Shown here piece by piece: positions 23,638 through 29,777 of a stretch of 32,000 nt of DNA (position 1 is the first letter of the stretch; each line of letters begins with the position of its first letter). The stretch comes from Zygophlyctis sp. KS116 (lineage: Eukaryota; Fungi; Chytridiomycota): the NCBI GenBank assembly GCA_054661495.1, contig BAAFSQ010000044.1, positions 1-32,000 of the forward strand, given 5' to 3'. Both the position numbers and the translations under genes were made by a program. The notes under the pieces were generated by a model. It was not told where the DNA came from. It saw only the letters and a list, made by a program, of their open reading frames with translations, and searched no databases.

Positions 23638-24516
23638 TCAATCAATAACAGAATCGCCTGGATCAATTGGTGATCTCTTTACTCTAAGATTTTCATCATA
23701 CATTTTCCCGATAAAAGATTGTGAATAATGATAAATAGTATAAGAAGATATCAGGATGAATGCAGACATTATAGAAAAAACATAAATACATCCAAAACTC
23801 TGATTACTGAAAAATTTAGAAAGTGCTGCCATTAGATAATGCAGACACAAAGTTGAAGAGACTATCATGATTTTAGATTTGGAATTTTGACGATGTCCAT
23901 GAAAACAAAGGATTGTTAATATAGTGTAAACAAGACTTAATAGCATGATTGTGATTCCTAAATCTTTAAAAAAAGATGTATTACCTGTAGTAAAATATAA
24001 ATCTATCGGACACGTAGAAGATAATATTATTCCCGCTCCTGCAGATTCAGCCAACTGCGTGGAATAATAGAGTAATGCATAAGTAAATCCGAGACCGACT
24101 CCATTTGCTAAAATTAATTTAAAAAGTATACCCAATGCATGATTAATTTGTTGTAAAAAGTCTGGTTCATCTAGTCCGATTTTGATTTCAGAAAGGCTTT
24201 AGAATTACATGGCGAATATTACCTGGTCGTTTTAAATGATAAATACCAACTTGCTTGCTGAATTACAGTGAATATTAAAAGAGAAGAATAATATGATGCA
24301 TCAATATCTAAATTTTGAAACGCATAATACGATATTATAGCTGAAAGTAGTGTGCAGACCAACCAAATGAAGCTACTGATAATTATATTTCTTCGTAAAA
24401 TACCTTGATAAGAACAAGAATACTAAAAAGGGATAATGTGAGATGTGGAATATAAAGATGGCCAGAATAGGCCCAAATGCGACTGTAGCACAACCAATAA
24501 AACTGATGGCTGTCAT
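23638..24516 (-). CDS. APH1: gamma-secretase subunit APH-1, 5 exons
   Basis: N-terminus MTAISFIGCATVAFGP, then SSFIWLV, the GVGLG TM4 motif, AESAGAG...C and LCLHY. Introns 24376-24403, 24197-24222, 24108-24131 and 23958-23984. Confidence 0.85.
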
Positions 24517-24573
24517 CGCTGATTAAACAACACGTTCGGCTTTTGACTTGTCACGCTCGACCGACTGATCAAA

Positions 24574-25541
24574 ATGTGGAAATTGATGATTTCGCTGATT
24601 GCAAGCTTTTTGTCGGTTGACGCTTTTCAACAAAAGCTATCATTTGAATTATCTCGTGAAATCAGATCAGCTCTCGATCCAATCATTATTGATCCATCCT
24701 TTGATCAACAGTCTGTAAAACCTCTAAAAATTATACAATTTTGCGGTAGAATTTTGGCTGAATGTATTCTGAATTCGCAATGTAGAAATACTCTACGTTG
24801 TATTAAAAAATGTCCAGTAGATCAAGTTGATTGCACAAATAATTGCTTTTTTCAATATTCTAATCCTATCTTTAATCATCTGGCAGAATGTATGATTAAA
24901 AATGAATGCTTGCCTCTAATCAGTTTCTCCAAGCACTCTTGCCCTTTTGGAGGTAATATTTCTTCCCGTAAGAACGGACTTATTGATCAAATATTTCTAA
25001 ATAAGGATAATATTGGGAGATATTATGTGGCTAGAGGTTGGAATAGAGGCTACGATTGTGTAAGTTTTATTAAATTCTAAAAATAAAGGCGGATTGTCAA
25101 AAATTAGAGTATGTTGGGGTAATAAGATCTCATGATGTATCTGATGATTACAAGAGATTGGATACATATTGGTCTTCACAAGATAATAATGGAGTAGTTA
25201 AAACTGTTAATAATACGTTGGTTCAAGATGGTCCGAGTACAATGACAACTAAATACAAGCTTTTTGGAATGGATGTAGAAGAACATTATTACTTATTAGA
25301 TTGGACAAATGATGGATCATGGGTCATGTTTTACTATTGCGGATATGGATTTGGTTCAGAATATCAGGGGGGTTTATTGCTTACGAGAAATATAGATTTT
25401 GAAGAGATTCCATCAGATATAGAGATAGATTTTGATACATCAATACGAGATGCAAGACTCTCTGATTATCTAGGACCAATTTCAGAATGGTGTCAGCCTA
25501 ATTTTACACAAGATTGTAAAGGATTTTGGATTAAAGACTAA
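24574..25541 (+). CDS. secreted violaxanthin de-epoxidase-family (VDE/VDL/VDR-like) protein: Cys-rich domain plus lipocalin
   Basis: Signal peptide; C-x6-C-x5-C-x5-C-x3-C-x6-C-x3-C...C-x5-C domain; YYVARGWNRGYDC|ADCQ; EEHYYLL; MFYYCG; YQGGLLLTR. Intron 25060-25088. Confidence 0.8.
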
Positions 25542-25588
25542 TATTACTCAATATAATACCAGTTTATTACATTTTCAATTTGTTTGTT

Positions 25589-26757
25589 TTAAAAATACTT
25601 GTAATTCTTTGGACTATGAAAGATTGATTTAGATTTATCTTCAAATTCATCTTCGAATTTCTTGGAGAATCCAGCTCTAAATGGTCTTTTTTTAGGAGGT
25701 AATGGATCAAGATTTTCAGTTTCCATTTTATGAGAATCAAGATTTTCAGTTTCCATTTTATGAGAATCAAGTTCCTCCTTAAACTCTTTTTCAACATCCA
25801 ATCCTTGAATACAATAGAACTTCCCGCTACTTCCATCTTTATATCCTTCAAGATATAACTCAAACGGTGGTTTTTTAGTCACATCCTTTAATGCCGTAAA
25901 TGCATTTCCTTCTCCAGACTCTAAAGACACATTAAATCTCGCATACTGTTTTGTAAATACTGGAGTTTCATTAATCACAACATGATACTGATCGACTGTA
26001 CCATGATTATTAGTAATCCCAATTTTAGGATCAAGAAGTAGCGCAGAAATTCTAGGTACAAGAGATTTAACTACAGTCTTCATAGAAAATGACACAATAG
26101 GAGGAAGCAAGTGATGAAACATCTTGAGGAAAATATTTGCAAAAGGATGTTTATCCATTACAGCCTAATTTTTAAAAATTACAAAGGAATTACATCAATA
26201 GAAGTGAATTTAATATCAAAAGTCTTCAAAACTGGAGTAGCTTGTTTGGTATCACTTAAATAAGCAAGTCCTAATTGTGCAAAAGGATTAACACCAGTGA
26301 TCGTGATATTTGCATTCCCATTCTTCAAAAATCTACTCATCAGATTTGCAATGCATTACCTAAGATTTGTACTAAAGTTTACAGCGCACTTTAAATCCAT
26401 TGTAAACGTTAAACCCACCAAATCAGTATCGAAAAAAACTCCAGTAGTTTCCAATGTTTTGTAAATTCGGACTCCATGACATCTTGTATCATTGAATACA
26501 ACCTTGATTGCTCCCAATGAACCGATTGGGATTTGAGAAGGAGGCAACGGCAATTCCACTTGCGTCAAAACTAATTCTATTATGCCAAATATCAATGGAT
26601 TCATCTCCTGCACTAGACTGCTATTAATGACAGTTTCAACTCCATAGAGAATGTCATCCATCTCTTCAGTCTCTTTGGCCGCCTTGGACCAAAAACTCCA
26701 TGCATCGGTGGAACTTATCAGGGCAAAATAGCTTAACAAGAGGAAAATCACTTTCAT
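25589..26757 (-). CDS. secreted protein, possibly TULIP (LBP/BPI-like) lipid-binding fold, 3 exons
   Basis: Signal peptide MKVIFLLLSYFALISSTDA, long amphipathic beta-strands followed by a long helix, charged tail. Two introns (27 and 29 nt) join ORFs 26356-26787 and 25589-26158. The fold call is a guess. Confidence 0.6.
25706..25771 (-). repeat. perfect 30 nt coding tandem duplication (LDSHKMETEN x2)
   Basis: atcaagattttcagtttccattttatgaga twice, followed by atcaag. Confidence 0.92.
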
Positions 26758-26821: not shown

Positions 26822-29777
26822 CTACTCCTTGGTGGTCTTTTGAGCAGCAGAAGCCCTCCAAGCAGTGATTTTCGCCTTGAGATCCACGTTTGGAATCACA
26901 TCTTCAATCTTTAGAGGTTGTCGATTAAACGGATCATGATTGTCAGAGAGTAGATGAGACTTGATTGTTGCCAAATCTACAGTTACTTGACTCGAGGGTA
27001 AAATGACTGGCTCTTCCATTAAAGTAAATAAAAGTGGATCTAAATTTGGTTAAACAGATAATAAATACCTAAAAATTCTTCTGGTACTTCACCCAATTCT
27101 TCTTCTTGAGAAACCTCGCTCTTAATCCTTTCTTCGACATGATCGACAAACTTGTACAAAACTTGGAGTTCAGCCTAGAAATTTAGAAAATATAATTTAC
27201 ATCCTTTTTCAGGGCATGTTTGAATAGTATTGATCCAGCTTTATAAAAAAGTTGTTTTGAATATGATCTTCCATCTCTAATAATTAAAATTATTCATCAT
27301 ACTTTGCAACAGCAGAAATGAATTCGACCCTTTGGCTTAAATTCATATAAATTTGAACAATATTATTCAAGAGTTCTTTTGGATTAAATCTATATTTTTC
27401 TGGCTCTCGAACCTTTAATTCTGAGCATCGCGGGCCACATAAAGCTACAAGATTAAAATTGAGCATGGCAGCTAAGCGATCAACAACTTCTGGAGCCATA
27501 AATGGATCAATCATTTCAGAGCAACTAGTAAGATATTCGAACATATTGACAGTCTCTCTACCCAGAGACATGGTAGAGAGAGCCTGTTTTTCATACTGTG
27601 CAAGTGATTCAATTTTTTGGTTTCTTGCTTCCTGATCTTCTTGACTCGCATTCACAAGAGGTAATTCTAACTCGTTTTGAATTGTTTGAATTTCTTTTAA
27701 TTTTGATAAACTTTCATCAAGTAAGTAAGTAGTATCATTCATCAAAAGAGCAGCAAAACGTACAAATTGCTCCTTGTTCTTACTCTCCCTTATAAACATT
27801 TTTCTGTGTTGACTATCTTCCCATACGCTTTTAAAAATTTGAGATATATGATATCTAATGCTAAACTTTTCATAAAATTGACTATGCATTCCAGACTGTT
27901 CAACATCAATGTAGAATTTTGTTAAACAGTGAATCAAATTCTCTTGAGCAAAATCATGAGTCCGGAATATATCATTCAAGCTTCCAAATTTTCTTCCAGA
28001 AGTATCTTGGTATAATGCGTGTGTAAAATGATACAAAATTTCTACAAGCTTGCTCTTTAAGTACGGATTCCTTAAATATGAACTATTGCACAGAAATACG
28101 AGAGCAAATGTTACGATTTCATTCCGAGAGATTGTCTCAAAATAATTTGTTTTGACCCTTAGTACATGGAGATAGAATTCACATATATCATCAAAAATCC
28201 ATTCAGGAACCATGCAAAATAATTTCGGTGGCTGAGGCTTGAGAGACATGAGAGATTTATTCTTGCAGCCTCCCCCAATAACGTCTGGTAAATCCATTCT
28301 ATTAAAATCATTTATAGGTACTGTTTCAGAGGCAGCGCATCGAATCAACCACAGAATAGCTAAATTGTAAAACTTAAGAGTAAGAGTAACATTATGTTTA
28401 TCAAGCAAAACACCATCAATCGCCAACTTTTCCCCAATCAGTTTGTCAAATTGATTTTGAAAGTTTTTAAATTGATTAGAGTACATTGCCTGCATTGGTC
28501 CATTCCAAGCACCACTAAGTTCATCTTGTCTTAATTTTTCTACTTGTTCCTTCATTTTATCCAACTGTTTCCCTAAATTTCCAGAATAACGTATTATACT
28601 CAGTATACCATAGTGATGATATGATAAAGTGAGAAAGAATATTTCAGATACAAAGTTGGCAGATTGATTTTCTGAATCTTTCAACTCTTTATGAAAATCG
28701 TCTGCTTGTGTTTGATCTGCGTGAATTCTTGTATCCTGCTGTACATCCAGCCATTCTGTTAAAAAAAGACAAGAATCCCTTATTAAATGAAACTTTGTAA
28801 AGTAATGATCCAAAAGTGGATCACAAAGAGCTAAGCAAATTCTAGATATATTATACATGAAACCATTTGTAGCAACCTGTCTTAGATCCATCTTCCATTA
28901 CAATTCTATAAATTACCTGTAATTTTCCACGATCTTTATTAAGTTTTAAAACTGTAGAAAAGAATTCCAACATCCTTGCTTTTCCTTCACTCCCAGACTT
29001 TATAATAGTAAAAATTGTGGAACTTGCAATTTTCGAAACAAAATCAGCCAAATAAACTAAATTCTTTTGAGCAGACTCTACATCACTAAAATTCCTATTT
29101 CCAATCATTACACCATTGACAGTCAAACATTCTCCATTTACACCATAAGAAGAAAACCAATTTGTAAGTAATTTGGGATCTCCATCTGGAAAAACACTAG
29201 AATTACTTAAAAAAGGCCCAAAAAGTGATAAATCCTGTATAGTTTTAGCTGTAGCCTGACTAGGTATAAATTCTAAATCTTGAACCAAAACTGTAACCAC
29301 TTCTGAAAACTCCATTAATTTAGAAAAACAAGTCAAAAAAGCCTTCAAATCTGTGTCTGTAATCCATTTTTGCCGCATTCGACTATTCAAATATTTGATC
29401 AAATCCAGTATTTGATTAGAGTAAGATTTAAAAAAATGCTGTAGAAAATCATCCTCTGGATTTTGATTTTCCAACAACTTATCAATAATTAGTCTAAATC
29501 CAATTTTAGAAGAAAATCCAAACAAATCACTGGTCTCATTATCTAGCACAAGCCCAACATAATTCATTACAAGTTGTTTTTCCGATGATGTCCGATAAAC
29601 ATGAAGCAAATAATTAAATGCGCAAACGTCGGTTTCAAAAGTCCCACATTTAAAATAAAGAATTCTTTCAATTAATGAGTCATCAAACTCTTTAATATTC
29701 TCGGCTTCGCATTCCCTAGCAAATTCCAGACTATAATATTGAGATTTGGGGTCAATAGAGATCAAGAAACTTTCCAT
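26822..29777 (-). CDS. UFD2: ubiquitin conjugation factor E4 (U-box), 5 exons
   Basis: NFVSEIFFL, RNPYLKSKLVEIL, QFYEKFSIRY, LMNDTTYLLDESL, RLAAMLNFNL, LCGPRCSELKV and U-box VPEEFL|DPL...DPFNRQPL. Four 25-29 nt introns, e.g. 28892-28916. Confidence 0.96.

Follow-up and report, generated by a model that had tools for sequence, protein, structure and literature searches.

Violaxanthin de-epoxidase (VDE) and its relatives VDL and VDR are treated, in reviews up to 2026, as proteins of photosynthetic eukaryotes (PMC13181403). In VDE, D177 acts as proton donor, Y198 and D114/Q119 serve ascorbate, stacking on the carotenoid (violaxanthin) is the role of W179 and the pH switch is made up of H121 and Y214; Glu at position 177 is the state found in VDL and VDR, and single Cys mutations cripple the Arabidopsis enzyme, AtVDE (PMC13181403). 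VDL1 is a proven violaxanthin-neoxanthin tautomerase (PMC7056318). Coesel et al. 2008 (PMC2483416) mentioned an oyster expressed sequence tag, which was dismissed as contamination, and an Acanthamoeba sequence; beyond this remark the literature searched contained no VDE-family protein in fungi, aphelids or animals, and the database records are hypothetical or mislabelled. Here a VDE-like gene is described from the chytrid fungus Zygophlyctis sp. KS116, located at 24574–25541 on the forward strand of a 32,000 nucleotide stretch of DNA (contig BAAFSQ010000044.1, positions 1 to 32,000, assembly GCA_054661495.1), hereafter the window. The product is almost certainly a VDE-family member of a new subfamily, and sequence comparison places the gene in a fourth branch of the family that is distinct from VDE, VDL and VDR and is shared with Amoeboaphelidium and Micractinium.

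Gene model and protein architecture

The VDE-like gene consists of two exons with the following features:

24574–25541, forward strand: two-exon VDE-like gene, coding for approximately 312 residues
24574–25059, forward strand: exon 1, 162 residues with Cys162 as the last codon, encoding the signal peptide, a linker, the Cys-rich domain and the first strand of the lipocalin barrel
24574–24624, forward strand: predicted signal peptide, residues 1–17, with a hydrophobic core, small residues and putative cleavage after V-D-A
24727–24942, forward strand: Cys-rich N-domain, residues 52–123, with nine of ten hallmark Cys, Lys52 replacing the first
25060–25088, forward strand: spliceosomal intron of 29 nucleotides, phase 0 (GTAAGT...AAG), between the C162 and A163 codons
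25089–25541, forward strand: exon 2, 150 residues plus TAA, encoding most of the lipocalin barrel and a C-terminal helix with two Cys
25209–25217, forward strand: N-x-T glycosylation sequon in the sequence, exon 2 residues 41–43

The splice boundaries were read from the sequence and agree with those of related genes. An intronless paralogue on contig C60 of the same genome aligned without a break across the window junction, orthologue P0003 was likewise continuous over the junction with no intron, and orthologue L008 carried a 25 nucleotide GT..AG intron of unrelated sequence at exactly the same codon boundary. These data uphold the two-exon gene with a host-type 29 nucleotide intron that had originally been predicted. 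In searches and trees the window protein was entered as separate exons, with the intronless C60 paralogue (the L001 open reading frame) as the full-length stand-in.

Exon 1 matched the Pfam VDE model (PF07137) over residues 53–162 with 48.3 bits (E 1.2e-12), above the gathering score of 25.7. Exon 2 alone had no Pfam match, and on a hidden Markov model restricted to members of the VDE, VDL and VDR clades it scored 40.3 bits, the best of 200 shuffles of the exon reaching 4.8 bits. An NCBIfam search gave no match. The original prediction had read the protein as a Cys-rich and lipocalin member of the VDE family and had proposed the Pfam search as a check, and the scores of both exons bear this reading out. 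Hallmark Cys residues were counted on 104 full-length family rows, with ten invariant Cys in alignment A3. Nine of these ten are present in the window protein, for which VDE-like Cys spacing had been noted earlier; the first, overlooked in that prediction, is replaced by Lys, as it also is in orthologue P0006, and only two other rows of the 104 differ at this position. There are 15 Cys in the window protein in all.

The N-terminus contains a hydrophobic core at residues 4–15 (10-residue Kyte-Doolittle maximum 2.53) and small residues at -3 and -1 before F18, features consistent with the signal peptide proposed at the outset, and the same signal-like design is present in P0006 and in many homologues. 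A resemblance of the predicted VDA-F cleavage site to the stramenopile ASAF motif had also been suggested. This comparison found no support and an ASAF-type targeting motif was rejected, the N-terminus resembling that of an ordinary signal peptide with a generic cleavage site. The sequon in exon 2 is shared, at matching alignment positions, by the window gene, P0003, the C60 paralogue, P0001 and P0002, consistent with passage through the secretory pathway, and the window protein is very probably a secretory-pathway protein. It ends a few residues past the last family Cys, after the C-terminal helix, with no Glu-rich C-terminal domain. VDE, by contrast, has such a domain together with bipartite thylakoid targeting, where the window protein has a predicted signal peptide and its host has no plastid. 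In VDL the Glu-rich tail is reduced or absent, as in the window protein, whilst VDR proteins have a long N-terminal extension, the domain lying at approximately 230–515 of approximately 530 residues, that the window protein lacks.

A structure was predicted with AlphaFold2 for the C60 paralogue using a 50-row alignment, so that the window protein is represented by a proxy. The model (predicted local distance difference test score, pLDDT, 86.7; predicted template modelling score, pTM, 0.81) comprised five Cys-bearing helices, then eight strands, then a C-terminal helix. Its top Foldseek matches in the Protein Data Bank (PDB) were the lipocalin domain of Arabidopsis VDE, 3CQR and 3CQN. Re-alignment to 3CQN_B gave a Z score of 18.5 and a root mean square deviation of 1.9 Å over 151 residues, the next lipocalin giving Z 16.5 and 3.1 Å; the next-best structural matches were ApoD, bilin-binding protein, sandercyanin and siderocalin. 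The two-domain shape matched VDE clusters of the ESM Atlas (Chlorophyta and Streptophyta) with a template modelling score of 0.74 over 256 residues. The structural comparison with Arabidopsis VDE that had been proposed earlier returned this protein as the best solved match of the paralogue model, and by this proxy the window protein is predicted to share with VDE (Arabidopsis NPQ1) a Cys-rich helical domain and an eight-stranded barrel nearest to the VDE lipocalin domain.

Distribution and phylogeny

The host genome (12.7 Mb in 1175 contigs, approximately 33% GC) was scanned in six frames and contained three VDE-family loci, the window gene and two paralogues. The close, intronless paralogue on contig C60 (L001:1390–2265) scored 95.1 bits on PF07137 and was 56–57% identical to window exon 2. 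The distant paralogue, at C61:34608–35398 on the reverse strand (L004:1459–2372, reverse strand), has a signal-like N-terminus, keeps Trp at position 179 and contains two tiny introns, one of 26 nucleotides (phase 2) and one of 24 nucleotides, in-frame and inside the Y-C-G motif. The nearest relative of this second paralogue was Cvel_6806 of Chromera velia, with 58–61% identity over approximately 135 residues, a value strikingly high for a fungus-alveolate pair.

The wider distribution rests on HMMER, run exhaustively over 1.84 billion representatives with a profile made from the window exons and close relatives, word-index homologue searching being ill-suited to so divergent a family; queried with the paralogue, the latter recovered no more than two relatives, at 70% identity, to which a 50-row profile added only the Quaeritorhiza protein. 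At E ≤ 1e-3 the HMMER search recovered 340 proteins, of which 96 were at E ≤ 1e-10, and many of the proteins are 260–330 residues long with signal-like N-termini. Taxon names were recovered for a sample of the matches, and these included the aphelid Amoeboaphelidium protococcarum (KAI3653994), a parasitoid of green algae; two species of the green alga Micractinium (KAL4438955 and KAL4443961, on contigs of 0.45 and 5.6 Mb); the Haematococcus parasite Quaeritorhiza haematococci, with a partial protein auto-annotated as 'VDE, chloroplastic'; Blyttiomyces sp. (KAJ3323542); and Chromera velia, Euglena mutabilis, a Lobosphaera VDE and a plant VDR-type protein. The Blyttiomyces entry (P0028, sp. JEL0837) is a 1393-residue model with the VDE-family domain at its C-terminus (approximately 1099–1393), and may result from fusion of gene models or represent a genuine multidomain protein. 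The ESM Atlas clusters nearest to the C60 paralogue were 282- and 291-residue 'VDE lipocalin domain-containing' proteins with Mollusca and Porifera as the commonest phyla, labels that make mollusc and sponge members a lead only, albeit one reminiscent of the oyster tag and the Acanthamoeba sequence of Coesel et al. 2008. In length (260–330 residues), signal-like segment and absence of a Glu-rich tail the window protein resembles the short VDE-domain database proteins of Amoeboaphelidium, Micractinium, Quaeritorhiza, Blyttiomyces and the mollusc and sponge clusters, among which the window protein and its orthologue are alone in lacking the first N-domain Cys. The premise of the original prediction that the family consists of plastid proteins of plants and algae holds for the literature but not for the sequence databases, in which chytrid and aphelid members are present.

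In trees built with FastTree and IQ-TREE (LG+C20) the window exons, the C60 paralogue, P0001 and P0002 formed one clade, sister to the aphelid group, and both together were sister to the Micractinium group. The 11-row clade containing the window protein and the Amoeboaphelidium and Micractinium proteins had a Shimodaira-Hasegawa-like approximate likelihood ratio test (SH-aLRT) value of 100 and stood apart from VDE (98), VDL (100) and VDR (100), so that the phylogeny with these three groups called for earlier assigns the window protein to a clade of its own. The C61 paralogue lay elsewhere, beside the Chromera protein, and the Blyttiomyces and Quaeritorhiza proteins occupied yet other positions. 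A single holomycotan clade was rejected by the approximately unbiased (AU) test (ΔlnL 133, p ~1e-26; LG+G4, 44 rows, the group having been named after the tree was seen). The scatter of the C61, Blyttiomyces and Quaeritorhiza proteins, together with the AU test, indicates that fungi hold several old lineages of the family, for which ancient paralogy with loss and several transfers are both possible. Gain of the gene by horizontal transfer, as first proposed, fits the observation that the nearest non-holomycotan relatives are the green-algal Micractinium proteins. Other chytrids also have numerous short secreted family members, as do molluscs and sponges if judged by their ESM Atlas labels. The (alga, (aphelid, fungus)) topology is compatible with transfer between alga and parasite and gives no direction.

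Genomic context and host organism

Upstream of the VDE-like gene lies a divergently transcribed APH-1 gene, given here for context:

24373–24516, reverse strand: first exon of the APH-1 gene (PF06105, 31.3 bits, profile positions 1–39)
23638–24135, reverse strand: further exon of the APH-1 gene (28 bits)

The two start codons are 57 nucleotides apart, and the match of the first exon to the beginning of the Aph-1 profile agrees with the original identification of this neighbour. The APH-1 gene (23638–24516, reverse strand) encodes a gamma-secretase subunit and is split into several short exons. This subunit is not known from most Dikarya. On the P0003 contig the gene order is that of the window, namely an EH-domain gene, the VDE-like gene, a minus-strand gene and U-box/UFD2. 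The VDE-like gene has the GC content of the rest of the window and an intact reading frame, and exon 1, which is 59% identical to that of orthologue P0006, gave a non-synonymous divergence (dN) of 0.29 and a synonymous divergence (dS) of 1.13 against L008, a ratio of approximately 0.26. The stretch was also found near-intact in two further freshwater runs, X2 and X3 (97–98% of sampled words), and partially in many others, besides run X1, which may be the source sample. A contig from X2 spans 24300–25735 with one difference from the window.

The fragmented assembly, derived from freshwater metagenome-type samples, raises the question of contaminant DNA, an assembly chimera or a decaying pseudogene. 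Against these readings stand the window-like GC, the tiny fungal-style intron common to the window gene and its orthologue, the APH-1, EH-domain and UFD2 flanks in the same order in relatives, the recurrence of the stretch in X2 and X3, the intact frame and the dN/dS ratio. These alternatives therefore retain a practically negligible probability. The locus is a native, expressed-looking and selectively constrained gene of a zoosporic fungus, and the earlier assertion that it is integrated rather than contaminating stands on its APH-1 neighbour, the intron shared with the orthologue, the conserved synteny and the dN/dS ratio.

Some observations on the surrounding sequence may be added. A strain 95–99% identical to the window, with many substitutions across the gene, was present over 24550–25289 in run X4, a freshwater metagenome; its contig (depth 4) shows a single-base deletion at 24861 that is probably an assembly error and not a frameshifted allele. 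Downstream, a convergent gene of 189 residues (25589–26158, reverse strand) with no Pfam match has its stop 47 nucleotides from that of the VDE-like gene and contains a perfect direct duplication of approximately 30 nucleotides at about 25700–25765, giving a repeated acidic peptide. On the contigs of relatives a gene of 219 residues stands in this place.

The genome contained at least six chitin synthase loci. For the one chitin synthase searched all named best matches were Fungi (Mucor, Linderina, Basidiobolus, Entophlyctis, Batrachochytrium and Blastocladiella, 53–64% identity), with unnamed relatives up to 90% identical. An axonemal dynein light chain is encoded within the window, and no gene for a chlorophyll a/b-binding light-harvesting complex (LHC) protein was found in the genome scan. 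On these sequence features the host fits a flagellated, non-photosynthetic, early-diverging fungus from freshwater samples, in line with the fungal and apparently non-photosynthetic host first supposed.

The same scan found no crtI-type phytoene desaturase above the cut-off, and neither a lycopene cyclase domain nor an RPE65-type oxygenase. It did reveal four loci of the bacteriorhodopsin family (PF01036), at C71:25549–26196 and 27504–28121 (reverse strand), the two being in tandem, C38:13424–13888 and C43:47777–48328. With none of those three carotenoid genes found, the assembly offers no evident source of a retinal chromophore for these rhodopsins. A 290-residue open reading frame of the SQS_PSY family (137 bits) lies at 107–979 on the reverse strand of the window; its scores against phytoene synthase (22 bits) and HpnD (41 bits) were weak, and it may be NDUFAF6-like and not a carotenoid enzyme. 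On the contig of a relative an SQS_PSY gene is found only approximately 2 kb upstream of the VDE-like gene.

Active site and possible function

Arabidopsis numbering was transferred by HMMER alignment to PDB 3CQN and by an alignment of 108 rows taken from the best 150 of the 340 representatives. The following active-site positions were located:

25054–25056, forward strand: Asp161, equivalent to AtVDE D114, an ascorbate-site residue (invariant in 106 of 106 family rows)
25098–25100, forward strand: Gln, equivalent to AtVDE Q119, an ascorbate-site residue (Gln in 95 rows)
25281–25289, forward strand: Glu-His-Tyr, equivalent to AtVDE D177-D178-W179, with Glu for the proton-donor Asp and Tyr for the substrate-stacking Trp
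25335–25337, forward strand: conserved Tyr, equivalent to AtVDE Y198, the catalytic Tyr

The residues D114, D117, Q119 and Y198 of AtVDE are all kept in the window protein, whilst D177 is replaced by Glu (Glu227), D178 by His and H168 by Tyr. Retention of the catalytic Tyr and replacement of the Asp by Glu, both seen in the original prediction, are recovered in the 3CQN and the 108-row alignments. Across the 108 rows D114 was invariant and Q119, the acid at 177, the aromatic residue at 179 and Y198 were near-invariant, and the near-invariant core of D114, C118, Q119, acid at 177 and Y198 is present in full in the window exons. The subfamilies have distinct signatures, H121/Q153/F155/H168/D177 in VDE, N121/E153/G168/E177/W179 in VDL and Q121/Y153/V155/V168/E177/W179 in VDR. 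The window clade has its own, in which Tyr at 179, also present in the Amoeboaphelidium and Micractinium proteins, is almost limited to that clade. With VDE the window protein shares D114, Q119 and Y198. With VDL1/VDL2 of chromalveolate algae it has in common Glu at 177 and Tyr at 198, and VDL offers a plausible model of an ascorbate-independent, epoxide-opening isomerase; VDL proteins are nevertheless plastid-targeted and share only E177 of their signature with the window protein. The VDR proteins of plants, green algae and diatoms likewise have Glu at 177 and Tyr at 198, Y153 being found in the C60 paralogue only, and of Q121/V155/V168/W179/E177 the window protein shares E177 alone.

The window protein is very unlikely to be a thylakoid xanthophyll-cycle enzyme. 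As an overall explanation, a non-plastid, secretory-route protein of the VDE family, acting on the epoxide of an isoprenoid from outside, is the best available and is given an even chance of being right. Following entry into the endoplasmic reticulum and disulfide formation, such a protein would work in an oxidising, non-plastid compartment, either secreted or endolysosomal/digestive, where a long hydrophobic isoprenoid would enter the barrel with one of its ends. Glu227 could then protonate the epoxide oxygen, with Tyr245 (Y198), Asp161 and the Gln at Q119 completing the active site. The chemistry might be that of a VDL-like epoxide-opening isomerase or of a VDE-like reductive de-epoxidase, and would resemble that of the Glu-type VDL isomerases more than that of VDE. 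The substrate would come from outside, since no carotenoid synthesis genes were found in the genome, and most plausibly from the epoxy-xanthophylls of algal cells. Retention of the polar core (D114, Q119, acid at 177, aromatic at 179 and Y198) speaks for an enzyme; catalysis on an epoxy-isoprenoid is nonetheless proposed tentatively, at somewhat below even probability. That the named relatives Amoeboaphelidium, Quaeritorhiza and Micractinium are algal parasites or algae fits an algal substrate, and an algal xanthophyll as the specific substrate is a more doubtful suggestion. The use on algal or pollen substrates put forward in the original prediction is likewise conjectural.

Several points weigh against this explanation. 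In addition to the exchanges given above, W179 is replaced by Tyr, a change missed in the original prediction, F123 by Tyr, Q153 by Asn, F155 by Leu and both pH-switch residues, H121 and Y214, by Leu, and D206 has no counterpart. The polar cavity residues might have been conserved for structural reasons. Because single Cys mutations cripple AtVDE and the first hallmark Cys is here Lys52, the window copy could be less active or non-catalytic. The fold was modelled on a paralogue, and the missing carotenoid genes are weak evidence in an assembly of 1175 contigs. Among the reads and contigs matched to the gene no RNA contig crossed the intron, and the sole support for transcription is one identical 261 nucleotide contig from a lake metatranscriptome that covers 25234–25494, inside exon 2.

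With its missing Cys and Trp-to-Tyr exchange, the window copy may only bind its ligand or may act on an altered substrate, and this reading is a serious rival. As a non-catalytic carrier, the protein would be a secreted or luminal lipocalin binding a carotenoid, retinoid, sterol or fatty acid, and may scavenge carotenoid or retinal for rhodopsins. Most lipocalins are binders, as the next-best structural matches to the model illustrate, and the genome combines four rhodopsin-like loci with no detectable genes for carotenoid synthesis or cleavage. Such a role is harder to reconcile with the acid at 177, Y198, D114 and Q119 all being kept under purifying selection, and buried charged residues in a hydrophobic barrel would be unusual for a pure carrier; it is regarded as possible but rather unlikely.

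An enzyme for an endogenous, non-carotenoid epoxide or lipid (a sterol- or squalene-derived epoxide or an oxylipin), with no algal link, would account for substrate-lining residues that differ from those of VDE, VDL and VDR and for the many short secreted members in varied eukaryotes, including in other branches those of Blyttiomyces, Quaeritorhiza, Euglena and Chromera. Every characterized family member acts on xanthophyll epoxides (PMC13181403, PMC7056318) and the nearest named relatives are from algae or algal parasites, and this explanation is considered unlikely.

A genuine VDE of the xanthophyll cycle, either acquired recently from an alga and still performing its plastid function or retained as a relic of a lost plastid, is suggested by the Pfam family name and by the NCBI label of the Quaeritorhiza homologue. 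The window protein lies outside the VDE clade, however, with D177, W179, H121, Y214, H168, Q153 and F155 all changed, and it has neither a Glu-rich C-terminal domain nor a transit peptide in a genome without LHC genes, whilst a recent transfer is hard to reconcile with introns of host type, three paralogues and synteny that is conserved in relatives. VDE sensu stricto and a plastid relic were rejected on the changed D177 and W179, the separate clade and the missing tail, and the probability left to them is very small.

At this locus a fungus without plastids has a VDE-family gene that is unambiguously native, has paralogues, orthologues and introns, is under purifying selection and is part of a sizeable and unstudied group of short, signal-peptide-bearing family members. 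The origin of the xanthophyll-cycle enzyme as a plastid-linked eukaryotic innovation consequently needs re-examination. It is a speculative and at present improbable generalization that organisms which eat or parasitize algae, namely zoosporic fungi, aphelids and, provided that the ESM Atlas labels are right, molluscs and sponges, use this fourth, non-plastid branch in a secretory or digestive compartment to open or remove the epoxide of xanthophylls from their host or diet. If true, it would supply missing enzymes of carotenoid-epoxide metabolism in heterotrophs and, in the fungus, might feed the supply of rhodopsin chromophore. For the handling of xanthophyll epoxides by parasites and grazers of algae, the gene is a concrete candidate.

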